Assembly: GCA_977016875.1 (NCBI GenBank)
Contig: CDRNST010000060.1
Span: forward strand, 2,046,001-2,110,000
Origin: Pavona decussata
Lineage: Eukaryota
Direction of reading: 5' to 3'
DNA: 64,000 nt
A program made the position numbers and the translations under genes. This document shows positions 6,599 through 63,825 of this stretch, one piece after another (position 1 is the first letter of the stretch; each line of letters begins with the position of its first letter). The notes under the pieces were generated by a model. The model saw only the letters and a list, made by a program, of their open reading frames with translations, was not told the origin of the DNA and did not search any database.

Positions 6599-9500
6599 CT
6601 ATGAACCCCTCAGTTCCCTCTTCAATATTTTTCCACTGGCCGTCTTGGGGATCTGTTCAATAAATTCCACTCCTCCTCTGAGCTTTTTGTGTGGAGCCAC
6701 TTTTTCAGCCACAAAATCTATGATTTCTGACTTTGTAACTTCCCCTTTTGGCACGATGAATGCTTTAGGAAGTTCTCCAGCTTCCTCGTCGGGAATCCCA
6801 ATCACTGCGACATCCAGGACATTTGGATGTGTATGAAGAAGAGCTTCCAGTTCAGCTGGGGGAACCTGTGCATGACAAAACTTTAATCAAGTTTCACTGT
6901 AAAACAAAAAATGGGCTTGCCTTTATTCTAACCTGTGAGTAGTTTGAGACAGTTTTCGATGACAGGATATATTACTTAAGACAGGACTTATAACCAAATA
7001 AAACATTAGGGGGGGAGGGGGTAGACATTTCCCTTGGCAAGCAGTGGGGAATGGAACGTAGCTTCAAATTGCTGGATATATATTATTATTATTATTACTA
7101 CTATTAATATTAGGGCTTAAAATTATCATGAAGGAGAATTTGGATCCCTCAGAAGAGAAGAGAGATTTCTGAAATAATCTTTCAAATAAATGTGTTTTTT
7201 TTTTTTGGGGGGGGGGGGGGGAGGAGGGAGATGGCCATGTGACAAAAGAAATGACCTTTGACCAGGGAATATTGTAGGGAAGGACAAGTATTATAACTTG
7301 CAGATCTGAGGAAGGGTTCAATTTTTATTTTGATGGGAGTTTGTAATTGAGAATAGTTAAAGGAGGTGTATAACGGGTGGAGTAATAATATTATTGAAGG
7401 CTTCAACTAAAGGTCGAATAAGCTAGGGGTGATAAACAGAGGATTTGTTGGGGATGGAGGTGGGGAAGCCATTCCAGGCATTTAAAGTAATCAAAATGTA
7501 TTACAAAAGCAGCCAAATTGCGCAGTGCAACCAGGCTGAAAAATTTACTTCAATTATTCTTCTTTGTTACCGTCAAATGTTGTTTTTTAGCCCTGGGCAT
7601 TCACGAAGAACTTTACCTGAAATCCTTTGTATTTAATGAGCTCCTTTAGCCTGTCCACAATGAAGAAGTGTCCCTCCTCATCGTAATGTCCTGTATCTCC
7701 ACTGTGGAACCATCCATCTGCAGTGATGGATTCTGCTGTGGCTTTGGGGTTATTAAGGTAGCCTAACACAGCAGAGGTTTTAACAAAGTTATCCACTGAC
7801 TGATTTCACAGGTGTACACATTTAATTATTAATAAGCCAAATCCAGTTGAAAAATTTGCAATTCCCTTCTTTCAACCATTCCTTATATGGGAGAAGTTGA
7901 TGGCATTTTTAATGTTACATGTATCTTTCTACCAATCACATGTAGTGAAATTTTAATGAACATCTCTCAGTAATACCATCTTAAAGTCAGACCTACTTAG
8001 GCAATAGTGTCACATGCAGTCATTTATAAGGGAGTGAGATAACCGTGGAGGCCCTTACTACCCCCTTACTCCCTTCTGTGTGCAAGGCTACTTTTGGAAG
8101 GGGCAATTATTTCCGTAACTGATTTTTTTGTGATATTTGTTTACTGGACAGGTACATATAATATTACGCTATGGACGAAGTTTGAGAAACAACTTAACAT
8201 CCTCAATATATATAGTCAAGCACATCTTATTGTTTTTATTACCATAATGATGGGCCACCCTGCCAGTTTTAACAAATGCCATTTAACTACTAATTTAGTT
8301 TTTCCGTAAAGCTAATAAAATAAACAAATAAAATGAATTTGTAGCTATTGTTCTTTTTGCCTTTAGTATAATTTTAACAGGTACAAAATAATAGAATTTA
8401 TTTGGTAATTATTGGAGCCAACATGTTACAGTAACATTATAATAATTTATTTATTTGGTGCTGGGCAATTTATGAATACTATTATTATTTCTAGATATTT
8501 TGGTAGATACATGTAAGTTTAATACAGCTGTGTGTGGAAGAAACAGTTCAAATTGGGCCTGTTTTTTCTATGGTAAGCCCACTGAAAAATCAACACCAAA
8601 CAATTAATGCATTATTGTACAAATATCCACATAAATTTGTATAGAAATATCACTGACAACAAATTTGCACACATTTCAATAGATATGCATTTCTTACAAT
8701 TTCAGAAAATTGACAAAAAGTTATTAATATGATTTTGCATATAGGAAATAACATATTGGTACCTTTCATAACAATGGGCCCTCTAATGCACACCTCTCCA
8801 TCTTGGTTTGGGCCAAGAGGTTCACCTGTTTGAACATCAACCACCTGCAAGACGAATTCCCCAGCACTGATCAATACTTAAATTTTCTGTACCTCTTCAT
8901 GTAATATGTCAAAAACGAGGGCGAGTGCTTTATCACGGGTTCCAAATACCGAGAAACAGATGAAAGCACAAGGCCGCAGGCCGAGTGCTTTCATCTGTTT
9001 CGAGGTATTTGGAACCCGTGATAAAGCACGAAGCCCGAGTTTTTGACATGTCTTCTCAAATGAAACAATAAGAAATTAATCTCATTAAAATGCAAATGTT
9101 TGATCTCAGATGAAAAACATGTTTCATCTCAGATGAAAACCTGGTGGTGTTTCATCTGGTGTTTCATTGGGGTATCAAGATTCATCCACCTGACCGAAAT
9201 GGAGGTCATTTATTGGCTTTTGACTGCATGAATTATTAATGAGTTTGAGAACATCAGATCAAGCACACAGGTAGTGATTGAGAACCAATATTTAGGTCCT
9301 GACACTTAACATGGCTGTTGTTCTTGAAAGTCACATTTGCACTTACCTCAAGTTTTTGATCTCCAGCATGTTTTCAAAAGCAACTGGGAGCAATTACTAT
9401 TCCCTCTCCCACCCCCTGCATGGGATGCCAGACTAACCCCTCCCTCCAATCCCAATGCCCAGGTGTCACAAGTACCCGGTTATACACCTGGGTGAGAGCA

Positions 9501-12500
9501 GAGGCCAATCTTGGACCAACAACACCCTGATTGCCCAGTCAAAAGTTTGCTGCACTAATTCACTGCTATTTTACCTCCCTATGCAAAAGTTTTACTGGTC
9601 ATGTGATAATTTAGAGGTAAAATCATACCTTTCCTTCAACATTTGGTAACATAACCCCAACAGCACCTGGCTTGCAGTTATTCCGAGGACAAAGCATCGC
9701 TGCTGGGCTTGTCTCCGTCAGGCCATAACCTGAAATGAATTTTTAAACTATTGGTCTCCAATTCTAATCCATTTTACCATGGCATGTCTTAACTGGTCTG
9801 CAGAAAGTGTGTTCTCCAAGGAGCAAAGACAAGGTTTAAATTTATTTCATTTTGCTTTTAATCCCTCTCTCCCTCTCTTGCTCTCTGTTCCTTCCTTCCA
9901 TCCTTGCCTCTCTCACTCCATTCTACTCATCCTTCCCTCCTCCTCTCTCCCTTCCTCCTTCAACACCTTTCCCTCTCTCTTTTCTTCTCACTCCTTTCCA
10001 CCCTCCTTCACTCCTTTCACCCTCTCTCTCTCTCTCCCTTCCTCCCTCCCTTCTTCCTTCCCTCCACGTCTATCTCTTCCTTCCTAATAAGCCCCCTCCC
10101 TCTCTTCCTCCCTCCTCTCTCTTTTCCTCCCTCTGTCTCTCCCTCCTACTCTCCGTTTCATCCTTCTTCCTTTCCTTTTTCCCTCCCTCCCTCTGTACCT
10201 CTCTCCCTCCCTTCTTCCTTCCCTCCATGTCTGTATCTTCCTTCCTTACACCCCCTCCCTCTCTTCCTCCCTCCTCTCTCTTTTCCTCCCTCTGTCTCTC
10301 CCTCCTACTCTCCATTCCATCCTCCCTCCTTTCCTTTCTCCCTCCCTCCCTCTGTACCTCTCTCCCTTCCTTCTTCTTTCTCTCTCACTCCATCTCTCCC
10401 TTCTTTCCTCACTCCCTTCCTCTCCCTCTCTTTCTTCCCCACTCCCCTCTTCCCTCCTTTTCTCCCACCCTCCTTCTCTTCCTTCCTCCCTCCCTCCTAC
10501 CCTCTCTTTCTCCCTCTATTCCTCCCTCTCCTACCCTCCCTCCTTACATCCTCCCTTCCTAACTTCCTGTCTATTTATGTATAATTCATTTAACATTTGT
10601 TTTTTCTTTCCCAGACAATTAACATTCTCCACTTATCATGGCAGTCTGTCTATCTGCATGTCGATCATAATATGACACATACCTTGCCCAAGAGCTACCA
10701 CAGTGGGAATGCGTTCTCTCACTGCATGAGTAAGTTCTTCACCAAGAGGTGCAGCACCACTGATGATGGTATCTATGCTTGTCAGGTCGTAATTTGCTAC
10801 TAAAGGATGCTTGGCCAAAAATGTGACAATTGGTGGCACAAGATAAACACTGCTTATCTGCAAGTGAACATGATTGAACGAGAAGGGAACCTTATGGTCA
10901 AATGTTGAAAGACCCTCAAAACAAAAGTCTTAAGAAAGTTTATGGTTCAGACATTGTTTGAAGGGCATGTCTACAAACTTCTGAATGTATCTGACTTGTA
11001 ACAAGATGTAATCTTCTTTACAGAACATTTTCACCAGAAACACTTACTGCAGAAAGCTGTCATGCAGGAGATGTTTTGTCTGGAAACCTTGTCACTGTTC
11101 CAAAAACACAGTGGAAGGATGCTTGCATTCATGTCACTTTCCTGCCAAAACTTGCTGGAGCTAAACACTGGTACCATTGCGTGGCTAGCATCTTTTTTAA
11201 TCATTTAGACTGACATTAACATCACAGTCTTACCTTGAAATCTTGCACTAGTCTTAGCATATGTTCTCCATCAAACTGCTGCATGCAGACAATTTTCCCG
11301 CCACGTTTCAAAAACTGTGCCATAACTACCACCATGCCAAAAATGTGGAAAAATGGAAGAATCCCTAGGACGGTGCCTCGCATTGGATGAGACCTGAAGG
11401 CTTCATGCATGAGCATGCATAATTGTGACACTATATTGTGATGTGTCAACATGACGCCTTTAGGGAAACCAGTTGTTCCACTTGAGTATGGCATGGCACA
11501 AATATCATCTCTTGGGTTGACTGGCACATTATGAGGAAATGCTGAGCCATCGTCATCCAACAGTGTGGTCAGGGGCTCACAGCCTTCTGCTTCTCCAATT
11601 ACAAACACATTGTTCATTCCAACTTCTGATGCCGCTTGCTTTGCTTTGTCAGCTATGGAAGGTATAGTGACAATGTATTTGGCACCTGAGTCTTTAAGCT
11701 GGTAGGCGATCTCCTTTTCTGTGTATGTGGGATTTAAAGTGGTTACCACACCACCAAGAGCAACGACACCAAAAAATAAAATGGGGTATTCAGGGACATT
11801 TGGAAGGTAGAGCGCAAATACATCGCCTTTCTTGAAACCTCTCTTTGTTAACGCTGATCCTAGGTTTTTAATTGAGGTACTTAGCTCATTGTATGTGAAA
11901 GACTTTTCTGAGCCACCATCAAACTAACAAAAGGAAATATAGAAGTCAGACTTTGTTATTGTCACAGTTATCAAATTTTTATATAACCTTTAATCAATAG
12001 AGAAAAACCAAAATATTTTAATCCTGGTGAAGACCCTTCAAGAAAACCAAGAAAGTTTGTGTATGGTTTTGTGTCTATGCCCCAGGGGGGATACTCGGGT
12101 ATAAATGTGACGGGGGGGGGGGGGGGGGAAGGGGGTCCGACGTATTTTTTTGGGTCTAAAATTTTCAACTCCTGTATTTTTTTGGGTTGAAGATTTAACC
12201 ATGTATTTTTTTGGGTCTGCAAAATCTGCGCGTATTTTTTTGGGTTCGAATTTCTGCCAGGCTAATGATTCTTACGCAATTCAAGCAAAGTTCCCGCAAG
12301 ATCCGCAAGGGAGAAAGGCGGTATGTATACTGTTCTTAAGATTGCCTTTTTAGGGTATAAAAGTCATGTAGTTTTTTGGGTCTAAAATTTCCAGTCTTGT
12401 ATTTTTTTGGGTGCACAATACCTTCAGATACCTCCCATAACATCAGATCACCTGTAACAAGTGGTCACTTCAAGAGGGTTGAAAAGAATAGGAAATTTCA

Positions 12501-14142
12501 AACAACGAGCTAAAAAGTGGCCATGGATGCTTATGAGAGGTGGCAGATCATTAGATAGGTTCCAAATTTTTAATAGTGATTTAACCACGAAAATTGTGGT
12601 ATAATTTTAGGAAAAGCAGTCACTTATGGGAGGTCCCTGTGAACCACCTCTTACAAGCAAACAGGTTTGACTGTAAGTAAGAATACTGCGCAGTACTGTT
12701 GTTGTATTTATTGTAATACATACATAACCACAAGTTAACTATTCTGCTTGACTAATATAAGTTTATACCTTTTCTTCATCTTGATAAATAGGGCACTGTC
12801 ACACTACTTTGAGACAACTGTAAGAAGTCTAGCTAGCATCGTCTTCTAACTCGAACTGTAACTCGAACCGGAACTCAAACTTAGGGGTATAGAATGGTAA
12901 AATCCGAGACCCGCTGAGACGCCGAGACCTTCATTTAAAATCCGAGACCGAGACTTAACTGCTTTTTCTAAATCCGAGCCCGAGACGTCGCGATGCAAAA
13001 CGTGTTTTTTACTAACACTGCCGAAAAGCATAGTACAGCAATTTACGAACAGAATTTATCCAAGCTTACATGTTTCACAGAAGCTGCAGAAGTGATTGCG
13101 ATGTTGAGCCGTTTTTCAAGATTATTGTTTGTTGTCAGTTTAGGACGGTTAATTCAGACTTAATTTTCGCTTGGTTTGCGAGACGTCTCTGAGATTGAAA
13201 TTTTAAAATACGAGATTCCGAGACCCGTTTTATTTTTAACGAGTTCGAGATTCCAAGACTCCAGTTTGAGACGCCAAGATTTCGAGACCCGCCGAATATT
13301 TGCCGAGACCCATTATTTTTCAAGGACCATTCTATACCCCTAAACTTGAACTCTACCTCGAATCCAACTCCAATCCAACGACTGTTACTTGCTCCCTAAT
13401 ATTTCTTGTTGTTTATTCAGATCAGAAGCCCAGCGGGAGGACTCTGGTTTCTATCCGCGATAATTTTCGTTTTCGTCGTCAAAACGATGGACTTTGACAA
13501 TCGTATATCGTTCGGGGGCTTTTAAGGTGAAAGCATTGTACAACTTTCTAATTCAGAGCCAATTCAATCCATCCTTTAATTGGCTCTGAATTAGAGAGTT
13601 GTACAGTGCTTTCACCTTAAAAGCACCCGAACGAGAATGTGCACTTAATTAAGTCCTCTACTATGCAATGACACGCTACTTAAGGTTGGGTTTGAATCTC
13701 TATTCTTTTGTATTTACATTGGGTCGCTCCACGCGGCGTAATCCCTAATAAAAACAACATTGATTTGCAAACAAATTATAGGTGAACTGAGCCAACATTT
13801 TATCAGCTATCCTGGCAATATCAGTAAAACTACACTTACCACTGCGATATCATCGCCGTGTGCTTGAAAGTTGCTCATCACAAACTCACTAAGGGACTTT
13901 TCTGGTACCTCAACTGTGTATTTGCTTTCAACAATGCCCGCTCTTGCTGAGCAGAATCTCGAGCTTGGCAATGTTTGTCCAAGAACTCTTGCCCGGAAAT
14001 GGGATACTGTTCTCAAACATTGCGAGAAAGATCGCTTCTCCAATGCAACGGCGCTTCGTGGTGGAAGTAAACCTTTTAACACGCTCCGGTTTAACAATCT
14101 TTTCATACAAACTGGACGCGATGCTTGAAGTACACTCGCCAT
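6599..14142 (-). CDS. 4CL/luciferase-like acyl-CoA synthetase copy A, about 587 aa, with a predicted mitochondrial presequence
   Basis: Exons 14142-13840, 11923-11234, 10857-10683, 9729-9629, 8844-8763, 7762-7617, 6865-6599, all GT/AG and in frame. Motifs [45 protein letters not shown]-terminal ~65 aa rich in Arg/Ser/Leu with one acidic residue. Ends LRGS (no PTS1). Confidence 0.92.
8906..9049 (+). repeat. Long palindromic element with central GGCC-GCA-GGCC hairpin
   Basis: ~70-bp arms ATGTCAAAAAC...GTTTTTGACAT with internal tandem GA/GA mismatches. Confidence 0.8.
9860..10570 (+). repeat. Polypyrimidine (CT-rich) low-complexity tract in intron 3 of copy A, with an internal ~160-bp duplication
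   Basis: Almost pure C/T. CCCCCTCCCTCTCTTCCTCCCTCCTCTCTCTTTTCC... occurs at ~10092 and ~10251. Confidence 0.9.
12883..13341. mobile_element. MITE in intron 1 of copy A
   Basis: TIR AGGGGTATAGAATGGT/ACCATTCTATACCCCT, flanked on both sides by AAACTT, with many internal CGAGAC repeats. Confidence 0.75.
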
Positions 14143-14247
14143 CTTGACCGCGCTTCCGGATTCTGTTGGTGCCTGCGCCTCCCTTCCCCTGCCTTCCCTG
14201 CAAAGTCATCGCGACCGTTCCTCTCCTCCCTTACTCCCAAATAAGTT

Positions 14248-14432
14248 CTAACGAGAGAGGACACAGAAGCTTCGAAAATGGTTCCTAAACTCTGCCAAAC
14301 AGTGCGAACATGACTGGAAATGACGGGAGAGGATCAGGAAGAAAATACGCTTCGGTTGAACAATCTTTTCGTACAAACAGAACGCGATACACGATACTTG
14401 AAATATATACTCGCCATGTTGACCGCGCTTCC
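14248..14432 (-). pseudogene. Diverged duplicate of the 5' UTR and presequence-coding start of copy A exon 1
   Basis: GGAAGCGCGGTCAA(c/g)ATGGCGAGT is shared with the copy A start. Translates MASIYFKYRVSRSVCTKRLFNRSVFSS* versus [23 protein letters not shown]. Confidence 0.7.
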
Positions 14433-14457
14433 TGGTTAGTCCCGCGCTGAACACAGT

Positions 14458-14775
14458 GGGGAGCTTTAGCAACGTCAGCGGAAACGTGAATTCGCATTTT
14501 TTCAAACGTCGTCGCGATTATTCTTATTTGCTTTAAATGTAAAATGCAGGTGAAATTTCAGGCCTGGAGTTGATTTCTTGGAGACAGCTTTCAAGTTTAG
14601 AAAGAGAAAAAAACAGTTCGTCGTCGTGTGTTTACGTCCTCCATAAAACGTCCCATCATGAAATTTCACGTCCCAGTCGTGCAGTGACGGCAAAGAAATG
14701 TACCAAAAATTGTAATCCACGCGCAGAGTTGTTGTTTTGGTTATTAAGGCTATTGCTTTTTTGACGTTCTCGTTC
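14458..14775. mobile_element. Dispersed non-autonomous element; second copy at ~27147-27505
   Basis: Shared blocks such as GTGCAGTGACGGCAAAGAAATGTACCAAAAA and TTGACGTTCTCGTT in both copies. Confidence 0.7.
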
Positions 14776-15861: not shown

Positions 15862-18800
15862 TTATAACTTGGATCGTGATTGACTCTGGCTGTTTCCACC
15901 TCGTAGCAGACGTCGCAATATTTTTCCACTGGGAGATTTTGGAATCTGGTCAATAAACTCCACCCCACCCCTCAGTTTTTTGTGAGGAGCAACACGCGCA
16001 GCCACGAATTTCACGACATCTTCGGCTGTAACGTCACCACGACGGACCACGAAGGCCTTCGGCAGCTCTCCAGCTTCAAGATCGGGAACACCGATCACTG
16101 CTACGTCATCGATGTTCGGGTGAGTAATCAATAACGCTTCGAGTTCGGCAGGAGCGACCTAAAACAACACGAAGAGTCCATAATGGTACAGATGGCATGC
16201 ATTGACAAGCGCGGGAAAATTTTACTGTGGTAGCCGTGAAAAAAAAAATTGTAACCGATTGCAAGCGCGGGAAAAGTCGCGTCGAGGCTAAATTGACAGC
16301 AAATGAGTGCTAGGAGCGGACGAAAATCAGTCCGATTTATTAAAATATCTGTGGCAGAGTGCTACAGATTTTTGAATCAGACCGACTTTCACCAACGCTA
16401 CACCAACAGAAAAGGAAATTGGCCGACAAATGGAAACGTGTTAACTGGCCCGTAAGATTGAACAGCATTGATAAACTGGTACAACCCAAAGGCAATTGGA
16501 TTGGTTATACACGAACTGTCTCACATGCAGGACTGAGGGTAGAGACGTAAATGGTCAGAGCTCGTTGCACACCGCGGAGTTCATTTATATAGCTTATTAA
16601 GTAGCAAACGAAATAAAAGGCTCCAAAACAAATGCAAAACGTCTGGAAAGAGGCAACAGAGAGAAAATTTGACGTCGATGACAACCGCGTGAAGCCATGT
16701 AACCAAGGAGGCCCAAAGGAAGATGCAGAGGAGACGGCAACAAGAACGTCACAAAATGAGCAACACAAGAGCTCTGCACATGCATTAAAAAATTGTAGTA
16801 CATAGAGGATATCACTTGGCGGCGCGAAGATATGAATTTTATCTTCGAGTGGTAAAATATTGTTTTTAACAAGAGAAAATAAAAAAAAAATTCATATCTT
16901 CAAGCCACCGTGTAATTTTCTTTTCATTATATAGACAAATCTATCGCTCGCCATTTTTCACCCACTGTTTGCACAAACGACCGTGAAAAAGCGGGAAATG
17001 ACGTCATCAATATCCTCACTAGTAAGGATATGGAAAATACGCCACTCGGTTCCCGGATGAAGTTTCGTAGGAATTTTACGAGTGGTGTATTTTCCAGTAA
17101 AACACTCCTGTCTATATAATATAAATAAGTATTTCTAGGTGACGTTTACGGGAGCAAGACGACGTGTGACTAGCAGCTAGCAGAAGATGAAACCGGTGAC
17201 AAAAACAGCGAAAAGAACGTTGACTGGGGTTAGCATCTTATTGAGGTGATTGGCTAACAGACGGAATAGACCCTCATCACTCGGCGGCCATGTTGAGTCT
17301 CAGGAGAATAAAAGGCTTTGTTTTCGCACGGCAAGCCTCGCCCAGACGCGAATTTAGTGCGAGGCTTACAGTGCAAAAACAAAGCTTTTTATTCTCCTGA
17401 GACTCAACATGGCCGCCGTGTGATTAAGGTCTATTCCGTCTTATTCATTGGCTCCAGTATTTTGAGCAGAGGGTTTGAAGTGAGACTTGACACAAACCCA
17501 AACAGTTCGGAGAGTGCACAAGAAAGTACTCTACCTGAAATCCTTTGTATTTTATTAACTCCTTAATTCGATCCACGATGTAAAAGTATCCTTCCTCGTC
17601 ATAATGGCCAGCATCACCGGTGTGAACCCAGCCTTCACTATCGATCGTTCGGGCTGTGGCTTCTGGTTTGTTTAAATAACCTGTGTGAATGAGATACAAA
17701 GGAAAGGCCCATCAAATCAGGCCTTTAACTTAAACGAAAGCATGCGAAGTATCAAGGGCGGTGGGAAAACATGTAAACGAGGCCAACGGCGGGAAAACAT
17801 GAAGCCGTACCAAGCGCGAGAAAACATGAAGCCATGCCAAGCGAGGGAAAACACGTAAGCAGTGCCAATCGTGGCAAAATGAAACCGATATTTGGCAATT
17901 TTCTCGATATCGATATATCGATACCGATATCGTGACGTCATCGTCATAGACTTTTCTGCAATGTTATCACCTACACTCTAAAAACACTCTTTACGGTCCG
18001 GTTAAACATTAAAACAAAAAACACACAGCTCTGGCGACTGAGTTTCAACTTTAAATTTGTGGTACTTACTTTGAGCTCAGAGCAACAGCACATACACAAA
18101 AAAAAAAAAATATCGCTTGCAAGTGATAACTTCCCTATCCTAGACAAGGTGAGTCCTCTTCGAACAAACTTGTTATATCAAATTCCCTGAGAAATCTGAG
18201 TTCCTCGGATTATTCCAAGATGCATAGAACGTAACCGCACGGATAAAAAAGGTCAAATTCCTTTAAAAATACCTTTCATAACTGTGGGACCCCTGATATA
18301 AATCTCCCCATCTTCATTCGGCCCCAGTGGGACTTGAGTCTCTTGATGGACAACCTGCCAATCAAACGATCAACGTCAAAGACGGTTATCACTTAAAAAA
18401 CATCATCTAAAGGTTTCACTGGTGAAGTAGGAAAACCGTGCAACTATCACCTTGCATTCCAGGTTTGGCAGAGGAACACCGCAGGAGTTTGGCTTGCATC
18501 CAAAGACCGGGTTAAGGTGGGTACCAGACACGCACTCTGTCAAACCATACCCTGCATTATAAACAAGACAGCTGATTAGTGTAGGAAATTAACAGGCAAG
18601 ATGGTTGTTTCGTAGTGAAAGAAAACAGTCTTCTTCATTGCCAATTTATATTTCCATTAAAGTGGCAAAAAAAGGAGCCTTATTCAACAAGAGAATGGGT
18701 AGAAGCAAGAGAGGATAAACATCCTCTCTTGGTAGGAGAGAAGCAATAGCACAATGCTGGCTGTGAAGCAGCCTTATGATTTTTACGGTCTGTACAAACA

Positions 18801-23685: not shown

Positions 23686-23818
23686 CTTGAATCCACAACA
23701 AGCTGGAAACAAGCTCGATTTGGACCCAGTCTCCCGGAGAGCAACTCGGAAAACTCGACTTGCTTCGCTCGGCGCTCGGCCCTACCGACCTTGGTTTTGG
23801 TCTGGAAAATAAGGGGCT

Positions 23819-29000: not shown

Positions 29001-29226
29001 CGCGCCACTTTCTCAACCAATGAAATGCAAAGGCAAAAGTAATCGTGACTTGTTCGCACTTGCTTTCCCGCCCTTTGCGCCGCTCACGTCTATCTCCTTC
29101 GAGTTCTGATTGGTTCCTTGCGCTGTTTACGCCTTTTCTGAATGGTCAGAGCAATTACTTTGGTATTGTTTTTACGAAAGTCAATAGAGAACCGCTCTAC
29201 AATGCGCCCATATCGTGTTCTGCAAA

Positions 29227-29277
<51 letters not shown>

Positions 29278-37565: not shown

Positions 37566-37569
37566 CTAG

Positions 37570-43314: not shown

Positions 43315-43378
<64 letters not shown>

Positions 43379-47819: not shown

Positions 47820-48387
47820 TATTATATCCGCCAATATTAACCGTCGGGTGCCTCAGACGTCTGTAGTCAGTTTCTGTGGCGCGGTAGCACCTGGCCTAAA
47901 ACAACGTTTTTACTGATTGTTTCTGGCTCTCACTCACACGGTACATTTTAACAAACCTCTTTATTGTTGAAAATAAACCGCGGTTACATTCATTACTTCA
48001 CAAAGTCCGTAGTACATCAAGCTCAGAGCAATAGATGATTATATGAAAATTGACTAGAACTGAACGAATCAACGTTTGTTACACTTAACCTGAACTGTCA
48101 ACTGTTAAGGGAGTAACAAGCTAAGGACATTTATACCGACTTTAGCAAGCAGAAACTACTTTATTCTACAATCAACTTCAACACTACAAAACTTGGTAAG
48201 AACTCACGAATTCTAAAACAAGATTTAACACAGCAGTAAACTGTGATCACTTCAAAAATCGTCGCCATAAGAATCACACAGTTCGCAGTTTTGTTCGCTT
48301 GTTTAAATCACACAGTTATTAAATCCTACGTTGTCATGTCCGGTGAATCAAAGCAAATCATGTTGAAACGTGGCACAGACTGCTGAC

Positions 48388-51300: not shown

Positions 51301-52331
51301 AATGAACAGCGAGTAAATGATGCAGTACGCGGAAAGTGATGAAGCGAAGTGGATTATTAAGAGACAGATGTTTGAGAACGTTGTCCACTGGTATTGGAAG
51401 GTGGCATTTTAGTTCGATTAAATGCATGTTAAAAGATCTTCAACATTAACATGACCAGTTTTCTCAAACTTCATGATTGTACTGATTATATTCACTGACA
51501 TGATATTTTTATCACTGACATGTGCCCCAAGTATTTAAAAGCGGCATTCTAGCTTCAAATTGCCAAGAAAATCCCAGCTGAACATTAGCCCAAAAAAGAA
51601 TATTCGTCGCTTTAGATAATCATTTGTGGTTGGCTGTTTTGATTTCTATGTCAACGTTGTAAATATAAGTAAAATTTAATATATTCGCTTACCTCACTAA
51701 ACGCAACCAATTTGGTGTTCTTGTTCACTTTTTCAAGGAACTTTTGCACAATTTTGAATTGATCCGTTTCGCCTTCAAGGTCCAGTACCTTGATATTGAT
51801 ATTTTTAAACCGCTGCTGTCTGATTTTCCAAGCTACCTCACCGCCAGTGGGATGGTTTTCGTTCCATACTAGGACTTCCTCTCCAGGAGCAAAATCCAGG
51901 CCATTGCTGATGACTGCATTGGGGTCTGAACCATTCCTCAGAAAAGCGACCAACTTTGGCTCCACGTTAAGTTGCTTGGCGATCAGCGCTCGGGCGAACT
52001 GGATGGTGTACACAAACGGCTTAATTCGCTTCTGGATGGAAATATCTCTGTTCCAATCCATCCCAATGCAGTTTAGAAAAACCTGCACTGGGTGGAAGAG
52101 GATCGACAAGTTTGCAGCGTTAATTGGGACGCAATCGGCGTAGTCATCATAAGCGAACAGGCTACGGACATAGTTCCACAACTCATCGTCCGGGATGGTC
52201 GATAAAGTGTTGATGATCTCTCCGAATGTTTTCTCAAAGGCGAGGAAGTTGTCACGTTCGATCAGCCCATGGCAGCGGTACCAGTGTGCGACTTTGAAGG
52301 TAGGGCGTTCCTGCAGAGTGAATTCGGCCAT
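48388..52331 (-). CDS. Class-V (fold type I) PLP-dependent enzyme, isopenicillin-N-epimerase/cysteine-lyase-like, 455 aa, two exons
   Basis: Exons 52331-51693 and 49116-48388, phase 0 (GAG|GTAAG...TGTCAG|ATC), Kozak-like gtcaccATGG. Motifs INAANL, RNGSD, ENHPT, HVDGAQSWG, GSHKWFLGPKETG (PLP lysine), MRFSPHIYNT. No NifS/SufS Cys loop. Confidence 0.88.
50510..51195. mobile_element. Non-autonomous element in the PLP-enzyme intron, with an internal ~210-bp hairpin at 50633-50842
   Basis: Ends TTA(T)TACTCGGGCC...GGCCCGAGTATAA. Internal arms TTCAAGTCCGGATATTTACAGGTTTGGACA / TGTCCAAACCTGTAGATATCCGGACTTGAA. Confidence 0.55.
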
Positions 52332-54600
52332 GGTGACGCCTTGAAGCAAGCCTCAGTAAAACCTCAACTGCGATACTAATACTCGAGCACTGTTGTGCAA
52401 TTTCTTTTATGCAAAGCGCAATGGGCGGAATCAATCAGATGATGAGCGTCTTGTCATTTTGGAAACAATTAAGAAGCTGAGGTCTAGCCTAGGTACAATG
52501 GGTCAATTTAGTATTGGCGCATACATACCAGCACGTACAACTATACATATTTAACCAGTTGAGAAAAAAGAGAAAATATTTTCTTCATTGAGCGGGGTAT
52601 CAACATAATAAGCCGAACACTGCAGTTTTTAAAACATCTAGGCACCGAATTGTGAGAAGGCATTGGAGACCTCAGCGGACCCCAGGACGTGCTTTTTTCA
52701 TTCGCTAATCTATTATTGTAAAAAAAAAACTTTCGTCGGTAATACAGTTAAGCTCACTTTCAACAAATGTTGTTTTCAAACAAGGTACTTTAAATCAATT
52801 TTTCGGTGTTTTTGCAGTTTAGTTTAATAAACCCACGAAGTTTTCTCACGCTGCAATGCGCAAGTGACTTAATTATTCACATCCATCAGACTGAAGCCAT
52901 TTTAATTTTTTGTTTCAACTGACAAACGTCAAGTGCCACTTGATGGTGCCACCCCACTTTCACGAAAAAAAAAAAAAACACCTGATTACACAGCACACTT
53001 GGTTGAACTTTGAATACCGAGCGCCAGATTGACATGTTTTAAAGTTAAGACGGTTTTACTCAGTTACCAAACGTTGGCAAACCCATTTTTGCAAATACTC
53101 TTCTCTTGGGCCATATCAAACTTATCATGCTAAAGTTTTGCAGCAATAGTTGAGAAATTCCAATCACCTTAAAATCTCTATTTTCTTGCCGGATTTTCCG
53201 ATTGAATAGATGTGGTGTAAGGTTAGTGTGGACGTATTAAGTACAAAAATTTAACTTGACAAAAGAGAAAATATTTCACCATTGAACAAGGTATCACTGA
53301 TACAAGTTGAAAACGCAAAGTTTCGCCAAAGCTAAGTGTAAGATTTTGTCTCAGATGAGAAAACATTGGAGACCTCAGTTGCCCTCATGTGTTGCTAAAT
53401 TTGGTAATTTATTCTTACACGAAACGTTCGGCTGTAAAACATTTAAGTTCACTTTCAAACGTTTTTTTTTTTAACCAAGATACATTTTTCGGTGTTCTGT
53501 CAGTTACGTTCGATGAATTCACGAAGTATTTTCACGCTGCAGTATGAAAAGAGCAGGTTTCAATTAAAATTAAAATAAGACGTGTTGACTCAGTTGGAAA
53601 GCACTCGAAAGTTAAAATATAAAGCAAAAGTTAAAACGCTAAACTGCAATCGTGAAAGACTGTGCTGACCAGCTTTGTATATTGCTCTATTGCTCTAATC
53701 ACAAGAATACAAATAACTTTAGTGTCACTGGATATGCAGAGTAAAGCATGGTGCAGTACATTTGTGTAATCTGTCGTGGACGAATTTTATTGGTTTGGCT
53801 GAACTTTTGTGATTGTCATGCCATCAGTAGTTGCTCATTCGCTACTACATGTGACAGTCGGAAGTTGGACCCAACTGGGCCAATCTAGTAGTTGCTCATT
53901 CGGTACTACATGATCCAAACTGTAAATCTACTGGCCGTTTCTTATTGTCTGGATTTATATTATTGGGATAAACATTCACGATGAAAAGCTTTGTTAATTA
54001 ACCGCCCAACTATGCACTATGCACTCCTGGGTGCTTTACATTGGATTAATGTAAATATTCCTTCTCTTTTGCAGAGCTATATTGAAGTTATCTTGTCAAA
54101 ACTTTTACAGCGATAATCGCCGGAGAAATGTCAGTTATGTTAAAGTCTCATGTTTCTTCATTTTCCGATTCAACAGTGTTCTCCTTCGCTAGCTGGAAGG
54201 AGCGTTGTGTGACGACACCAAGAACGGCTGCGTACATTGGATCATGGAGACTATAATTTAACAGGATCAAGTGCAAATTAATATAGTCTAAGCGCGTTGC
54301 AGTTCCATTCCAGCATGGGGTAATATTTTTTAACTTCCAGAGAAAAGAAACGAAAATTGATCTTCATCGTTGCACAAGACACAGCCAGAGAAACGTTCAT
54401 TTAAATAAAATGATGTCACCATCTACCAATTGCTGGCTGGCGTTGTTTATTTTCGCTAAGTTGGCAAGCTTTAAAAACCAAACAATGCACTTGTTCTTGG
54501 CTTCCTTACACTGGACCAATGTAAATACCCTGTCTCTCTAGCACACTGAAACTTTGAAGCAACAATTGTGAACCTTCTGTCATCTTCTCAAGCAGTTTAA

Positions 54601-56840: not shown

Positions 56841-57648
56841 GACGTTTATCACTGCCTAACAACTGACTGTTCAGCTCAGGAAAGAAAACTGGTTAATTCA
56901 GGTGAAGTTCATCAAAAATCATATCAAAAGGTTGCGGCGATAGATGGATCCAGTTTTTCTTTTTCCGTTATGCAAGGGTCCCTACGTTGTCCTTATGTTC
57001 GACAGAAATCTTGTGTCAATCGTTCGGTGATAAATAAGTATGTTCACCATTTGCAGGCAAAAACCGGTTGGGATCACTGTTAAATAATTATGTAAAGGAA
57101 AGTGTAAAAAGACACGAGCAGACGAACTGAATAAGATGGCACTTACCATTTGCAATACTGCGCAACTCACCAAACTGTCATAAAAGCTTTTTTTTCATTA
57201 GGGTAATCAGTTTATGGTATAATCTGCCGAGACACACAGCTGAGAGCTTCCAGTTATTTAAATCCGGGCTCAAATTTCACTTGAAAGTCTTGGGATTTTG
57301 TAATTTTAATTTTCAATTTTTCGTTAGGAAGTTTTTGCATACGGCTAACCTCCAAACTTTCAAAATGCCTTTTTTTATATAACTGCATCTTGAATACAGC
57401 ATTTTATGTTATGTTACGTTATGTTACGGTACTTTACGTTACGTTACGTTACGTTACGTTACGTTACGTTATGTCATGTCATGTCATGTCATATCATGTC
57501 AAGTCATGTCATGTCTCCTTTATGGAAGCCATAATGCGGAATTTTTGTGACGATCCGTTCCGAACAGAAAAACGAGGACTATCTCGAAATTTTCGAGATT
57601 TGATTTGTAACCGACATTTCAGGATTACTTAAGCAAATGATGAACACC

Positions 57649-60600
57649 TCACAATTTAGCCTTAGCATGTTTTGCTTTCTCTTGTGTTCTGAGCAAGCGC
57701 CGTAGAATCTTCCCACTTGGCGATTTTGGTATCTGGTCAACAAACTCCACCCCACCCCTCAGCTTTTTCTGTGGTGGGACCTTCTTGGCGACGAATTCCT
57801 TGATTTCTTCTGACGTCACGTTCCCACGACGAACCACGAAAGCCTTCGGCAGCTCTCCGGCTTCGAGATCGGGGACACCGATCACTGCCACATCGTCGAT
57901 GCTTGGATGAGTGATCAATAACGCTTCGAGTTCGGCGGGAGGAACCTGTAAAAAAAAAGAATATATAAAACAAAAAAGAAATGAATGAATGAAGAACATC
58001 ATTTAACTTTCAGGGAGAAATTGTTGAAAATGTATCAAATTATGGCCAAGTCTGGTTGGGATTATACCGAACTAGAGAAAAAATTGCCAATATCCCAACT
58101 TTGTTTCTTTTCGCTTCAGTGAGGTTTAAAGAGCAGTGAATTGAATGTCAAAAGTAACTTAGTTTTTCAACCAAATCCAGCACGCATTTTCCGGCGCTTG
58201 ACACCATTTCCTTGGATTCGCTTCGAGTTCCCGTGGATTCATTTCTTAACGTTTTTTGCGATTGTTTAGAGTAATGAACTGCTCTATATTTACCAATTCC
58301 GATTTACATTCGCAAAGAACAGGATAGAGAAGCAGCTGACGATTAAACAAAAATAAACCGAACGAGGATACGCCTTATTGCGAAAAAAGAAACACTAGCT
58401 TATTTATTTCGTTCTTTCTCTCTCTTTTTTCATTTATTGTTATGATGATTGCTGATGAACGTTCTTGCTTCTATGAATTAATTCTTGTCTTCTAAAGGCC
58501 AGGGCGCAATCATTGTTCCTGGGTTACAATAAGACGATTATTTCAATGAAGCAGTGAATATAGGAAGTTTTTGGCCATTGGATTTTTCGCGCTCGGCTTC
58601 AGTTGTATGCTTTAATGAAATCAAAGGAATCGTTGACAAACCATAATATAATTAACAGAAGCGGCTCTAGAAGATCCCGTAAGTTGGAGACCCTTGGGCC
58701 TGGAGTTCAAAACGTTTCAGTTAGAATTAAAGATATTTCGCCCTCTGATCCTTACAAACTGGGCTTCTTCCCAGTAGATCCACAACTATTTCATAAATTT
58801 TCACCGTCAAACTGGCGTACTGCATGTATACTTATTAACACCCTTTTTAGTCGAACTCACGTCGAGCAATATTGCCATGGACGTTAATTTACCTGAAATC
58901 CTTTGTACTTGATAAGTTCTTTTAGTCGATCAACAATAAAAAAATATTCATCTTCATCGTAATGTCCGATGTCTCCCGTATGAAGCCAGCCTTCACTATC
59001 AATTGTTCGCGCTGTGGCTTCTGGGTTGTTTAGGTAACCTGTAAAAAGGTTCATGCAAATGTTACCTATCCATACAAACGAATTGCCAATGATATCAACA
59101 GAACAGCCAAACAATACACTTAGCTGACAATAGAGTGTGTGTACGGCGGCCATGTTGGAGGACTAAAACAATAGAAAATATTTCCATAAAAATAGAATAT
59201 ATTTCCCACAGGAAAATCATTGTATTGTTTCGGTCCTCCAACATGGCCGTCGTGCACACACTCTATTTGACTAACAACGGACTGAGGAAAACAATAACAA
59301 AAATTAACGTATCTGACATCACAAAAACAGACCAATCGCTGTTTTGAGTATTCGCAGCCAATAAGATTAAGGCTTAAAGGGGGAAGTGCGGTTAGATTCT
59401 TATGAAATCGGATGTGATTTAGGAAAGAAATAAGAGAGGGATAAAGAAATTTTGTACGCTCCACCAGACAGTCCACCACCCATCACCCGAAAGATCTTCG
59501 GGTTGTCAGCAGACTGTTTCGATGTCATATGATACTCTTACTTATTAACCTCAATTTCAATTTTTAACACCTTAAAATCATGTTTTCAAAAATATATACC
59601 ATCTGTTCATTAAAGCCCTCCCAGCTGACTGTTTAACAAATGGACGGCAGTTTCCTATGGTCTATACTCTTATAGACCATAAAATGGCGTCAAAAAATGT
59701 TCAAAACTCAAGTGGAACCCCGAGCCGCAGACGAGTGATTTCCCTTCCAAGTTTTGAACATTTTATGGCGTCATTTATGGTCTAAAAGAGTAAGGCCCAT
59801 AGAAAACTGCTGTCGATTTTTTTTTTTTTTACAAAAACATGGGAAAAGTACGTGCGGAATTGGCTTTATTTTCCGTTTAAAAAAGCTCGTGTGTTACATC
59901 TGACGTAATTTTTATTGTCTCTTTAACAAATCGACGGCAGTTTTCTATGATCTACACTCTTATAGACCGTAAAATAGCGTCAAAAAATGTTCAAAACTCA
60001 AGTGGAACCACGAGCCGCAGGCGAGTGGTTTCACTGCCAAGTTTTGGACATTTTATGGCGTCATTTTATGGTCTATAAGAGTATAGACCATAGAAAACTG
60101 CCGTCGATTTATTTTTTACAATAACATGGAAAAAGTACGAGCGAAATTGGCTATTTTTTTCGTTGAAAAAGCGCGCACGTTACATCTGACGTCTTTTTAT
60201 CGTCTGTACTCTTATAGACAATAGCTACGAGCCAATCAGCGCGCGGGAATTTAAACAGCTATTGTAAAAAAAAAATATTATACACAATAGCTACGAGCCA
60301 ATCAGCGCGCGCGGTAATTTTGTAAAAAATGGAGATGGTTCGTGATGTATCAGGCCCACATTCTAACGGAACAGTTTTGGATCCATAACAAACTTTCCTA
60401 TTTGTTCACACTGTACCGCTGCTTTCTGAGCCACCTCTTCGAGAAAGCTTTGTACCTGTTGCAGAGAAAGGGGTCTTAAATCCGTAATCACACGCCGTGA
60501 ACATCTTGCTAGATTTTCAAGAAAAATGCATGGCGTAACTGTGCAGATTTGGCGAGGATTCATAATTTATCGGTACAGGTCGGATTACCGTGACAGTTCG

Positions 60601-61444
60601 GATCCTTGTAAGTTTTGTAAAGCCAAAACAAAAAAATCGCCAGGTATGCCCGGTGCAGCGATTGCGATTTTCGCCCGCGATCGATGGCTTGTCAGATATC
60701 GGCGATTAAAATTCGCCGGCATTCGCCAAGTGTGCCCGTTCCCGCGATTTTCTACGTTTATTGCTGCGAATCGCCAGTAAGGCCAACCCATCAGGTTGGG
60801 CGATTTTATCACATGAGTTTTCAAAACTGCCACATCGCCGCGATCGGCGTATAAAATCGCCAGGTGTGTCCGCATCAATCGCCAGCGAAGGCGATCAAAT
60901 TCGCCGCAATCGGCGTATAAAATCGCCAGGTGTGTCGCTGGCTTAACGAAACAATTCGGATCCTTACGAAGCGATTTCGTTCAGGTGATCGAGAAAGGAA
61001 AGATCGTTGCTAATTGTAGAGAAGTTGTTACCAATATGAAGTTTTCCTCACCTTTCATAATGGTTGGCCCTTTAACGCATATCTCACCGTCCTGGTTAGC
61101 TCTCAGAATCTCGCCAGTGTCGGGATTAATAACCTAATTAGTATAAACACATTATTATCAAGTTAATTTACATTTTGAGAGAAAAAATTTCCATGGTAGT
61201 AGTTTACTATCATAGGTTACTCAAGTCATAGCTTACCTTGCATTCCAGGTTTGGAACTAACAGACCAACGGAACCATGCTTGGCTTTCCCCTCAGTTGGG
61301 ATGACGTGAGATGCTCCAGCAACCTCCGTCATACCAAAGCCTTGATGAAAAAGAGACAGGAGAAAGCAAAAAGTGAATGACCAACTGGATAACCAAACTA
61401 CCAACCGAATTGACTGACTGACGGACGAATGGACTGGCTGACTG

Positions 61445-61475
<31 letters not shown>

Positions 61476-63825
61476 AATGGACTGACTGACTGACTGACTG
61501 ACTGACTGTGAAATACAATTATCAATAGCAACAGCAACGATGGTAGGAGCAACAGAACAACACTGAACGGCAATGTCTAACCATCCATCAAACTAAACGA
61601 AACTGTAGTTGTACAACAACAACATAAATAATAACGGAAGAAGCAACCAAACAATAGCCTGCGTGCAGACGTCACTTATTTCCTATGTTCACTCTTTTCC
61701 TAGTGCAATAAAGGAAATAGGAGACGTCTGCACGCAAGCTACCAAACAACAGCTGAAAGATCTACTCCATGCCAAGTTTAAGAATTGGTCCATGCTTAGC
61801 GTGCGTATATCGAGTTATGGATGCACGCGGGAAGTTTGAAGAGCACGAGAGAAGCGTAAGAGTTGCTCGATGCGTAGCCAAGTGCACCCATAACTCAATA
61901 TACGCACAGCTAAAAGTCATGAACCAATTCTTTTATAACATAGTGACAACAAAGTATCGAAACGTGATACGCGAAAAACAGGTTTTATTTGTGATTGGTT
62001 ACAAAATTCTCTCAATGCGCTGCACCGAAAAGCAAAGGTTCTTATCTGCTGTTTACACGCCACAATGGTATGGTCTGAACGAGAAAGTTTCATCTGAAAT
62101 TGTCGATGAAAATTTGCTTCTTTAAATTAGTTTGTACAAAGTAAAACTAAGCGACGGAAACCCGAGTTTGTCTGCAAGTTGCACACGTCATTTTATGGAC
62201 GCACGGCCGTGCGTACGTTTAGAAAGTACCATGATGGCGCCAACAGGAATTAGATAGGGAAGCACGCGCACTATGTTATAAACAGAATTATTACAACAAC
62301 ACAAATAACTACAGAATGCTTCATATATACACCTACCTTGCCTTATTTGCTGCACATTAGGGAGGCGTTTCAACATGGCTTCTTCCAGCTCCTTGCTCAA
62401 TGGGGCGGCTCCACAGCCTACACGGACCAGCCTGGACAAATCATATTTATCCACTAGGGGGTGCTTGGCCAAAAACAAGACTAGTGGAGGGACGATGGGT
62501 GCATCCGTGACCTGTAACATGAAGTATTAGGGACGACACAAAACAGCAGGTTTCATGAACAAATGATGGGTCGGTATTTTTTTGTTGTCCTCTGCAAACC
62601 AACAACGTCAAGTGATCAAATTCGAGTCTTGGTGAATTTTGTCTTTCTTCCCCACAATTTAAGCTCACCATTCGAAAGGGAATAGGTTACTCAGTTGGTA
62701 TTTTTTTCATAGGATTACGTTATTTCGCATGTAAATAACGTAAACACATCAACCGTGGAATAAATCCTAGGGGTCAACGCTAAATTCAATATCGACAATA
62801 TGAGTACAATCCACTAGAATTTTCTGTGAATTTTGGTCATCAGCCATTTTGCTATGACGAATTATAGAATGTGATTACTGAAGTACATGTGAGTGGGATT
62901 TTTAAGGCCATAAAGTTGATAAGAAAGAGAAAAAAGTTTTAGATTCATGCACATGCGCTGAAATGTGAACCCCTCCCTTTAAATGCAATTTGAACGAGTT
63001 GGAATGCATAATAAATAGTTTTAAAAAGGTGATGTTATACGAGACGATTTGCAACATTGATTTTCAGCACACCGAATCCAATGAAAATTGTGCAGAAAAT
63101 CGTCGTGTCAACTTCCTACGCGACAGTGTTGCGCTGAATCGACTAGTTTAACATCACCACCACCAAGTAGGAAAAGCACTTCCCGAAGAGTACATTGTAC
63201 TCACATCATGTACTTTTGATTCAAAATGTTCAATGGAAATCGATAAAATTGCACCACCATATTGCACAGACTACTGTACATCTACACCTCATGATTGCTC
63301 AATAACGGCTACATGCGACCACAGACTCAATAGTGTATTCCAGTGAATGGATAAACAAAATGACTGCTGTGGCGAACTATAAAAAAGCTGAAATTTCGTG
63401 GCTATACTTCAAGTCTCTCGCTCTGGGAACGGAATCGGCTGAAAGCAATGAGCGACGGGCCACAGTAAAGGTAATATGAGACTTTGGCCAGAACCAAAAA
63501 GAGCCCAAGGAAAGCCTCTTGAATGTCGTGCCAAATTCTCCATCATTATAAACAGCAAGCTAACCTTGTAGTCTTGTAATGTTTTGAGGAAGGCCTCAGG
63601 TTCAAAGCGGGGGAGGAGCACCAGCTTCCTTCCAAGATGTAGACATCCACCCATCATTACCAACAGCGCGTATATGTGATAGAAAGGGAGGAGGTTGAGA
63701 ACCACTGCTTTGTCGGGAAAGATGTCATCATTGAATATCAGAATCATTGCAGCTACAAGGTTGTGGTGTGTGATCATGACGCCTTTGGACAGACCGGTTG
63801 TTCCACTTGAGAAAGGTAAAGCCAC
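57649..63825 (-). CDS. 4CL/luciferase-like acyl-CoA synthetase copy E (5' part beyond the window), peroxisomal (C-terminal AKL)
   Basis: Exons 63825-63565, 62511-62337, 61340-61237, 61133-61052, 59038-58893, 57945-57649, in frame. Motifs [30 protein letters not shown]. Ends HAKAKL*. Confidence 0.9.
59632..60320 (+). repeat. Tandem pair (~290-bp period) of palindromic elements with a CGAG-CC-GCA-GG-CGAG apex
   Basis: TTTAACAAAT(g/c)GACGGCAGTTT starts at ~59632 and ~59922. The tail ACAATAGCTACGAGCCAATCAGCGCGCG is also duplicated. Confidence 0.8.
60621..60943. mobile_element. PIF/Harbinger-type MITE of the same family as 5021-5355
   Basis: Shared internal sequence and right end GTGTGTCGCTGGCT|taa. 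Confidence 0.75.
61410..61508. repeat. (GACT)n microsatellite
   Basis: Directly visible. Confidence 0.95.

Follow-up and report, generated by a model that had tools for sequence, protein, structure and literature searches.

Introduction

Terpene-synthase gene clusters of octocorals are reportedly conserved across deep lineages and biochemically validated. For the enzymes treated here, two described groups are closest. The first is the branch of ANL enzymes with the 4CL-like peroxisomal acyl-activating enzymes, firefly luciferase and Drosophila CG6178. The coral ligases share with it the two-domain AMP-binding architecture and the motifs A3, A5, A8 and A10. A C-terminal PTS1 in three coral copies and the best PDB matches (4CL, FadD and luciferase-family enzymes) also agree with this branch. 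The second group comprises the group-II class-V PLP enzymes, namely SufS/CsdB, PvdN, C-DES, EgtE/Egt2 and the JGI-annotated isopenicillin-N epimerase. The coral PLP enzyme has the fold in common with them, together with the SHKW PLP lysine and the invariant D-G-A-Q and H-K-W positions. In desulfurases the persulfide Cys sits in the C-terminal lobe. PvdN carries a Tat leader, as do the bacterial relatives of the coral enzyme.

A stretch of 64,000 nucleotides from Pavona decussata (GCA_977016875.1, contig CDRNST010000060.1, positions 2,046,001 to 2,110,000), called the window below, was investigated, in which ligase genes of the first kind enclose a gene of the second. The results speak for a commonplace tandem gene family and a neighbour unrelated to it. 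In prior literature nothing directly relevant was found on coral 4CL arrays, or on horizontal transfer of class-V or isopenicillin-N-epimerase-like genes into corals or other cnidarians.

Ligase genes

Five ANL (4CL/luciferase-like) genes lie on the minus strand of the window. They share one 7-exon plan, their splice sites are conserved and their catalytic motifs are intact. An all-against-all comparison of stop-free minus-strand segments gave six or seven homologous blocks common to all copies. Canonical GT..AG sites were located at identical positions and phases in all of them, and exons 2, 4 and 5 are equal in length (175, 82 and 146 nt).

Copy A (6599-14142; exons 14142-13840, 11923-11234, 10857-10683, 9729-9629, 8844-8763, 7762-7617 and 6865-6599) codes for about 587 aa and ends with RGS, without PTS1. 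Copy B (15862-23688; exons 23688-23575, 20873-20184, 19812-19638, 18551-18451, 18354-18273, 17680-17535 and 16158-15862) codes for about 534 aa and ends with SKL, a PTS1. For copy C (26020-36767; exons 36767-36660, 33398-32712, 31609-31435, 30633-30530, 28809-28728, 26749-26604 and 26307-26020) about 529 aa were obtained with the PTS1 variant SHL at the end. Copy D (38652-46273; exons 46273-46166, 44811-44116, a third exon from within an assembly gap to 42708, 42102-41996, 41438-41357, 39418-39273 and 38927-38652) also has about 529 aa, if exon 2 is of the family's 175 nt, and ends with ACP, without PTS1. The implied open reading frames of these four copies (587, 534, 529 and 529 aa) are each a multiple of three. 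Exon 1 of C and D is 86% identical.

The gap in copy D (N at 42872-43052) conceals the acceptor and about 11 nt of exon 2. Its flanks probably adjoin and the figure of 181 for its length is nominal, because they are collinear, in the same orientation and 46 bases apart on one continuous contig stretch of a related coral.

Copy E is present with its 3' part (57649-64000; exons 63825-63565, which is the second half of exon 1, 62511-62337, 61340-61237, 61133-61052, 59038-58893 and 57945-57649), ends with AKL (PTS1) and runs off the window. An extra intron of about 1 kb splits its exon 1; the first half follows at C60:2110876-2111319 and exon 0 at about C60:2112451-2112564. An earlier note on this DNA had described an array of five same-strand copies. 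Profile matches, homologous blocks and splice sites confirmed the five genes of the window, but the array itself is larger. The 5' part of E and two more copies, F and G, lie beyond the window, so that the array consists of seven tandem copies over about 88 kb. An eighth copy is located at C60:2.30 Mb, about 190 kb from the array. Similar ANL arrays with the same exon plan occur in other stony corals.

The large exons match PF00501 (E 1e-21 to 5e-50), with 77-171 bits in all five copies at a Pfam cut-off of 29.9. The last exons match PF13193 (70-78 bits for copies A and B) and hold in all five copies the SGKIL(R/K) motif with the catalytic A10 lysine. Besides SGKIL, all copies carry SSGTTG(L/F/V)(P/S)KG and G(Y/F)G(L/M)TE. 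The P-loop motif A3 has the PKG form in A and B and a Pro-to-Ser variant, SSGTTG(V/L)SKG, in C, D and E. The best solved relative is plant 4CL (E 6e-30), followed by archaeal FadD and luciferase-family enzymes. Judged from these sequences, the ligases are 4CL/luciferase-like ANL enzymes of a native animal family. A firefly-type luciferase was rejected, since beetle luciferases match at E 1e-18 or weaker, whereas 4CL and FadD reach E 6e-30 to 2e-29. The coral ligases are nearer to 4CL than to true luciferases, and light emission is not implied.

Targeting was predicted from terminal motifs alone. The N-terminus of copy A is extended by about 60 aa rich in Arg and Ser, a stretch that resembles a mitochondrial presequence. 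Copies B, C and E are predicted to be peroxisomal by SKL, SHL and AKL, and D would have neither signal. The tandem paralogues may thus be a clean example of divergence in predicted targeting (peroxisomal, mitochondrial-like, neither).

The PLP gene

As the earlier note had stated, an unrelated, co-oriented PLP gene is located between D and E. It spans 48388-52331 on the minus strand, with D 2.1 kb downstream and E 5.3 kb upstream of it, so that non-homologous enzyme genes are adjacent. One copy was found in the genome. The protein of 455 aa is encoded by two exons. Exon 1 (51693-52331) gives 213 aa from the ATG and covers Aminotran_5 profile positions 42-146. Exon 2 (48388-49116) gives 242 aa and the stop, with the SHKW PLP-lysine motif and the C-terminal lobe. 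The intron between them (49117-51692) has 2576 nt, GT..AG ends and phase 0. A repeat at 49540-49703 inside this intron is highly expressed.

Transcription and splicing of the PLP gene could be demonstrated. RNA-like contigs cover 47978-52729 on the minus strand, with untranslated regions of about 400 nt (5') and about 410 nt (3'); an AATAAA (47965-47960, minus strand) follows just past this extent. The joint 49116->51693, which corresponds exactly to the predicted intron, was present in contigs from four runs of three studies. Exon depth is tens of times intron depth in these contigs, which show transcription and splicing and are not suited for a ranking of expression. Spliced transcripts of a coral orthologue are joined at the same point, and the two-exon structure recurs across many coral assemblies and transcripts. 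Nothing points to a transcript that runs from the PLP gene into copy D; a 30-base loose end past the PLP 3' UTR in one run is absent from the window.

The exons were searched singly, and the full-length coral orthologue P0163 (64-70% identical) served as stand-in in searches for homologues, in scans against families and in structure prediction. The two exons match the class-V family PF00266 with 67.8 and 27.1-30.1 bits (cut-off 21.5). Family alignments show no variation at the H-K-W positions, and the PLP lysine is kept. The C-terminal lobe lacks Cys: none occurs after residue 48 of the 242 aa of exon 2, and the part that aligns with the Cys loop of SufS is likewise free of it. The earlier note's description as a bacterial-type class-V enzyme without the desulfurase Cys was therefore correct. 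A cysteine desulfurase (SufS/IscS/NifS) was excluded, as the active-site Cys loop is missing and the SufS model gives 54-96 bits at a cut-off of 475. Equivalogs of PvdN (82 vs. 650 bits) and EgtE/Egt2 (EgtE 24.7 vs. 400 bits), tested with the full-length orthologue, were also rejected. Every NCBIfam match of the PLP family is far under its cut-off. The fold matches SufS, PvdN and C-DES (TM 0.80-0.84, at most 23% identity), a search that does not separate class-V subfamilies.

Close relatives with 60-73% identity come from corals and an octocoral only, and the named relatives, with 33-39% identity, belong to bacteria. The coral sequences group as a single clade amid bacterial ones in a quick ML tree. 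The bacterial relatives have an SRRxFL (Tat) leader, which the coral proteins lack. These tests support an acquisition of the gene from bacteria. RidA, which scavenges enamines produced by beta-eliminating PLP enzymes, adjoins the bacterial homologues at 19 of 80 loci. In the searches made, this expressed, intron-bearing enzyme of bacterial type was found among animals only in corals and one octocoral.

Linkage across genomes

The adjacency of PLP gene and ligase array is kept in two close relatives (L021 and L022), hence in three genomes including Pavona decussata, and is older than the duplication of C and D. Non-coding DNA of both relatives is 75-88% identical to the window. Since the intergenic DNA of these relatives can still be aligned to the window, shared adjacency is expected by descent alone. 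Assemblies were called close or distant by sequence identity alone.

Elsewhere, 8-10 kb on each side of the PLP genes and 14-36 kb per array locus were read. Within 8-10 kb of the PLP gene no ANL gene was found in Tara coral scaffolds, two long-read coral assemblies and Paramuricea. In the more distant corals ERZ25067868 and ERZ25067872, PLP genes and the nearest ANL arrays are on different contigs, an arrangement compatible with looser linkage on the same chromosome. The array stretches of three further corals, including 36 kb of Desmophyllum, did not contain the PLP gene; at the array locus of L114 the contig end is too near to judge its presence upstream. In distant corals, the ORFs flanking the PLP gene matched no Pfam family. 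In other assemblies the PLP gene is tandemly duplicated by itself. From these comparisons the adjacency appears to be kept only where non-coding DNA still aligns.

In bacteria, an ANL gene within 8 kb was detected at 4 of 80 PLP loci, all four in related Acidobacteriota MAGs. This frequency is estimated to be about chance level.

Discussion

The locus is probably an ordinary tandem ligase array with an unrelated PLP gene of bacterial descent, and the adjacency a positional accident rather than a pathway. Native animal genes for 4CL/luciferase-like acyl-CoA synthetases would have multiplied by repeated local duplication, and the copies would then have begun to diverge in targeting. Most likely, the ligases convert fatty or other carboxylic acids into CoA thioesters via the acyl-adenylate, mainly in peroxisomal metabolism. 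A coral ancestor would have taken the PLP gene from bacteria. Afterwards the Tat export leader would have been lost and one spliceosomal intron gained, and the gene is expressed. Its product is most likely a cytosolic enzyme of the C-S/beta-lyase type or similar, not a persulfide-forming desulfurase. The gene would have arrived at the array, or stayed there, only in the lineage of this genome and its close relatives.

The earlier note had suggested that ligases and PLP enzyme could form a metabolic gene cluster for a single pathway, and had proposed microsynteny across anthozoans as a check. This suggestion is not supported: outside the closest relatives, no sampled coral has the PLP gene linked to the array, the bacterial association with ANL genes is near chance, and the predicted compartments differ. 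Thus, the speculation on luciferin-like compounds, DMSP or detoxification should be dropped.

The tight, co-oriented adjacency (D at 2.1 kb, E at 5.3 kb) in three genomes, spanning the C/D duplication, counts against an accident. It would fit a young, lineage-specific cluster, in which the PLP gene landed in the array and was recruited with one or more neighbouring ligases into a two-step pathway, e.g. one in which an acid is activated and a cysteine or thiol conjugate then cleaved or epimerised, with linkage selected in the genus or family. Expression of the PLP gene agrees with this, as does purifying selection on it (90-94% amino acid identity vs. 82-88% in the neighbouring non-coding DNA), and RidA at 19 of the 80 bacterial loci fits a lyase reaction. 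Nevertheless, we consider such a cluster unlikely. The three linked genomes are close enough for synteny to last without selection, the linkage was not found in more distant corals or Paramuricea, and the PLP gene duplicates alone in tandem elsewhere. Bacterial ANL neighbours are not above chance either. Furthermore, three ligases have a PTS1 and one a mitochondrial-like leader, but the PLP protein has neither. That a C-S-lyase-like gene was captured in a peroxisomal ligase array and wired into a new two-enzyme pathway, as a nascent animal cluster, is likewise unlikely. If true, an enzyme gained by horizontal transfer would stand at the centre of a metabolic gene cluster, which is rare in animals.

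Alternatively, the PLP enzyme could belong to an unrelated thiol-histidine or sulfur pathway, for instance as the C-S lyase of ovothiol synthesis, and its place in the array would be irrelevant. Metazoans except Hydrozoa are without recognisable OvoB, though OvoA is present in Anthozoa (PMC8433421). The missing desulfurase Cys, the weak similarity to the sulfoxide lyases EgtE and Egt2 and the FGE-sulfatase-domain genes of this genome (at domain level only) point in the same direction. However, EgtE reaches 24.7 bits at a cut-off of 400, SufS and PvdN score higher, and within the searches made other ovothiol-making animals do not have the PLP family. Hence, this assignment is very unlikely.

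Bacterial contamination or misassembly, to which the bacterial origin of the nearest named relatives might point, is refuted by the spliced PLP transcripts, since RNA-like contigs from four runs lack the GT..AG intron. The gene also lies inside a 6.7-Mb contig with animal genes on both sides, and many assemblies and transcripts of corals show its two-exon structure unchanged.

Relative to the 4CL-like branch, SKG replaces PKG in the coral copies C, D and E, and targeting signals vary between the copies. The coral PLP enzyme differs from the group-II class-V enzymes by at most 23% identity to any solved structure and by the missing desulfurase cysteine loop; furthermore, the coral proteins are leaderless and have an N-terminal helical extension. 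Compared with the octocoral terpene-synthase clusters, the adjacency of PLP and ANL genes is limited to close relatives and is without a biochemical link or the logic of tailoring enzymes. In common with those clusters, non-homologous enzyme genes, one of them likely bacterial, lie side by side in an anthozoan genome.

The ligase array

According to an earlier note, five minus-strand ANL (4CL/luciferase-like acyl-CoA ligase) copies, A to E, and a bacterial-type class-V PLP enzyme gene between D and E may form one metabolic gene cluster. The identities of the ligases and of the PLP gene were confirmed, but their functional coupling into a pathway is not supported by synteny, bacterial association or predicted compartments.

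For the ligases the description was correct. Five minus-strand ORFs of 138-248 aa matched PF00501 in a Pfam search (E 1e-21 to 5e-50), and the last exons matched AMP-binding_C. The top solved relatives of exon 1 were plant 4-coumarate:CoA ligases (E 6e-30) and archaeal FadD, followed by an ancestral luciferase, Drosophila CG6178 and beetle luciferases. By all-against-all comparison of stop-free minus-strand segments, every copy was found to be built from one common series of homologous blocks, with canonical GT..AG at all block boundaries and with aligned position and phase common to all copies. Exons 2, 4 and 5 measure 175, 82 and 146 nt in each copy with both ends visible. The models, counted in whole codons, comprise 587 (A), 534 (B), 529 (C) and 529 aa (D). 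The P-loop SSGTTGx(P/S)KG, the motif G(Y/F)G(L/M)TE, the hinge region with its YKGFQ end and the A10 lysine motif SGKIL are kept in all copies. Only in copy E is exon 1 split between KEDL and VALPFSSG, by an extra GT..AG intron of ~1 kb (window 63826-64000 and C60:2109826-2110875, C60 being the contig of the window); translation of the inserted DNA gives repeated VSYQKCPANRVLP-like units.

The extent of the array was determined by a whole-genome Pfam search and by reading the neighbouring DNA. Copy E runs on beyond the window edge, and past it the copies F and G follow on the same strand up to C60:2134603. An eighth ANL copy lies at 2.30 Mb of C60. The 16 kb beyond the opposite window edge contained no ANL exon. 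The contig, of which the window covers 2046001-2110000, has a length of 6.7 Mb, the genome of 602 Mb.

The sole N run in the window (42872-43052) touches copy D. Exon 2 of this copy ends at 42708 and, with the 175 nt of the family, would start ~11 nt into the gap; hence, the acceptor site and the first few codons are hidden. Window 43321-43053 aligns to 11135-11410 and window 42871-42444 to 11457-11878 of L021, a locus of a closely related coral. There, both flanks belong to one continuous stretch with order and orientation kept and 46 bases between them. Thus, judged by this alignment, the two flanks are in all likelihood contiguous, and the gap is overstated by its nominal 181 N.

GC content is ~40% throughout the window. 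An uninterrupted plus-strand ORF of 338 aa (3800-4816) with TFIIE-beta core and TFA2 winged-helix 2 domains, apparently an intronless general transcription factor gene, adjoins the array on its downstream side. The strongly skewed GC and AT at 10-12 kb, as well as plus-strand ORFs of 226-236 aa that are spurious, go back to a C/T-rich tandem repeat within an intron of copy A (9991-10403, 2.6 copies of 159-bp units). Dispersed repeats are represented by two pairs of fragments (5012-5553 and 60588-61009; 2837-3032 and 42263-42574), which showed 53-86% protein-level identity between members and no Pfam match; one member of each pair lies within an ANL intron.

Structure and expression of the PLP gene

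Aminotran_5 (PF00266) was matched by the minus-strand ORFs 51651-52349 and 48388-49140. The gene model consists of two exons that are mutually in phase. Exon 1 extends from the ATG at 52331 to 51693 (213 aa, end GAG|gtaagc), exon 2 from 49116 to the stop at 48388 (242 aa, preceded by ttgtcag|), both on the minus strand. The gene is single-copy in the genome.

Expression was examined over 47900-52800 with assembled contigs, presumably of RNA, from four runs of three studies on the same organism. Contigs of all four runs contain the joint 49116->51693, skipping exactly 2576 bases with plus-strand CT..AC; one run has >255 letters to either side of the joint. The summed contig depth was ~50-700 over the exons versus ~2-15 over most of the intron. 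Joint and depth follow the pattern that RNA gives; thus, the PLP gene is transcribed and spliced at the predicted intron. The transcript ends near 47978, just beyond AATAAA. For P0163, a full-length coral orthologue of 477 aa, transcript-like contigs join the two exons at the same residue. In contrast to the remaining intron, a short element at 49540-49703 reached a summed depth of ~6500-9000 in all four runs, and contig breaks were frequent at 49537 and 49582. A dispersed repeat with high expression is the probable explanation.

Linkage of the PLP gene and the ligases

In other genomes 8-10 kb of flank were read per PLP locus, and genomes were classed as close or distant by sequence identity alone. 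Two coral assemblies (L021, L022), with ANL exon 1 84-90% identical to copy C, shared the arrangement. The order is PLP gene (91-94% aa identity), D orthologue and C orthologue in L021, and PLP gene, D-like copy and B orthologue in L022. Hence, the PLP gene lay upstream of the D/C ancestor before the D/C duplication. Introns and intergenic DNA of both loci can still be aligned with the window (75-88% identity), so that the kept gene order needs no selection.

The microsynteny check went against the proposed cluster, as the linkage was absent in every more distant sample. Four Tara coral scaffolds (L012-L015) showed no ANL exon at a distance of up to 8-10 kb from the PLP gene, which is followed there by a partial, degenerate exon 2 copy. 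Nor was one detected within 10 kb of the tandem PLP pair in two long-read coral assemblies, or in 31 kb of the Paramuricea locus. The PLP gene forms a tandem pair in more distant corals (L018, L019), and the PLP flanks of distant corals are alike among themselves and unlike the window. The closest ANL copies in the two long-read assemblies, ERZ25067868 and ERZ25067872, form arrays on other contigs than the PLP gene (PLP on ctg79225 at 1.22-1.24 Mb, ANL on ctg79283 at 0.67-0.73 Mb; PLP on ctg20919, ANL on ctg20182). In array stretches of Desmophyllum pertusum (36 kb), ERZ25071797 (20 kb) and ERZ25071802 (14.6 kb) the ANL copies follow the same exon plan, and a PLP gene is missing.

Bacterial association was examined at the best 80 loci with a PLP homologue, each read together with 8 kb of DNA to either side. 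Bacteria commonly have ANL genes, and by our estimate about five of 80 loci would have one nearby by chance. Only four did; these belong to related Acidobacteriota MAGs, with the ANL gene on the opposite strand.

The predicted compartments differ as well. Copies B, C and E end with SKL, SHL and AKL, which we take to be peroxisomal PTS1 tripeptides like those of firefly luciferase and of 4CL-like enzymes from plants; no PTS1 stands at the ends of A and D. Exon 0 of copy A (13840-14142, minus strand) encodes an Arg/Ser-rich N-terminal extension of ~60 aa, which resembles a mitochondrial presequence and has no counterpart in B, C and D; at ~14337-14517 the exon sequence recurs in degenerate form. 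From these motifs, a peroxisomal location would follow for three ligases and a mitochondrial one for another. In the PLP enzyme no targeting signal is recognisable, and no conserved C-terminal PTS1 was found in the coral PLP proteins. Together with the missing linkage in the more distant corals sampled and the bacterial loci, this makes a young, lineage-specific functional cluster of PLP gene and ligases very unlikely.

The simplest reading, which we consider probable, is a native ANL array with a PLP gene relocated or retained in one lineage. The tandem array would be a usual gene family expansion, present too in other stony corals. The PLP gene would have been acquired horizontally and moved into the array in one lineage, or retained there only in that lineage. 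The remaining probability falls to other roles of the PLP enzyme and to unforeseen explanations.

Relatives, fold and candidate role of the PLP enzyme

Homologues were searched among 1.8 and 5.8 billion proteins with the exons as queries and P0163 as full-length proxy. Relatives at 60-73% identity came exclusively from transcriptomes and genome assemblies of corals and from Tara coral metagenomes; over exon 2, 60% was reached by an annotated gene of the octocoral Paramuricea clavata. The next named matches were bacterial (33-39%; Vicinamibacteria, Gemmatimonadota, Desulfobacterales, cyanobacteria). In a quick, unrooted maximum-likelihood tree the coral sequences formed one clade (support 100) with two unnamed sequences as sister, the whole group standing amid bacterial branches. 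By their isolate names, several MAGs among the bacterial loci (L027-L106) may stem from sponge or other marine-invertebrate microbiomes, which would then be a possible donor pool for the coral gene.

The enzyme retains the PLP lysine (SHKW) along with further invariant positions. Its C-terminal lobe contains no cysteine, nor does the part that aligns with the Cys loop of SufS, and all scores for the NCBIfam families SufS, PvdN, CsdA and EgtE were far under cut-off. The confident structure model of P0163 (pLDDT 89.6) matched SufS, PvdN and C-DES with TM 0.80-0.84 at <=23% identity; these matches confirm the fold, not the reaction. Conserved neighbours at the best 80 bacterial loci are a class I/II aminotransferase (39/80), RidA (19/80), a beta-propeller protein and glutaminyl cyclase. 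The RidA neighbourhood hints at beta-elimination chemistry.

Genes with an FGE-sulfatase domain are located at G000:C93:6069404-6071396, C13:1990259-1995565 and C162:1287972-1288079 of the coral genome, and one of them might be OvoA. An OvoB lyase is not known in animals except Hydrozoa (PMC8433421). Thus, the class-V lyase-like enzyme of the coral is a candidate for the OvoB step. The coral proteins lack the twin-arginine leader SRRxFL of their bacterial relatives, which in this leader resemble the periplasmic PvdN.
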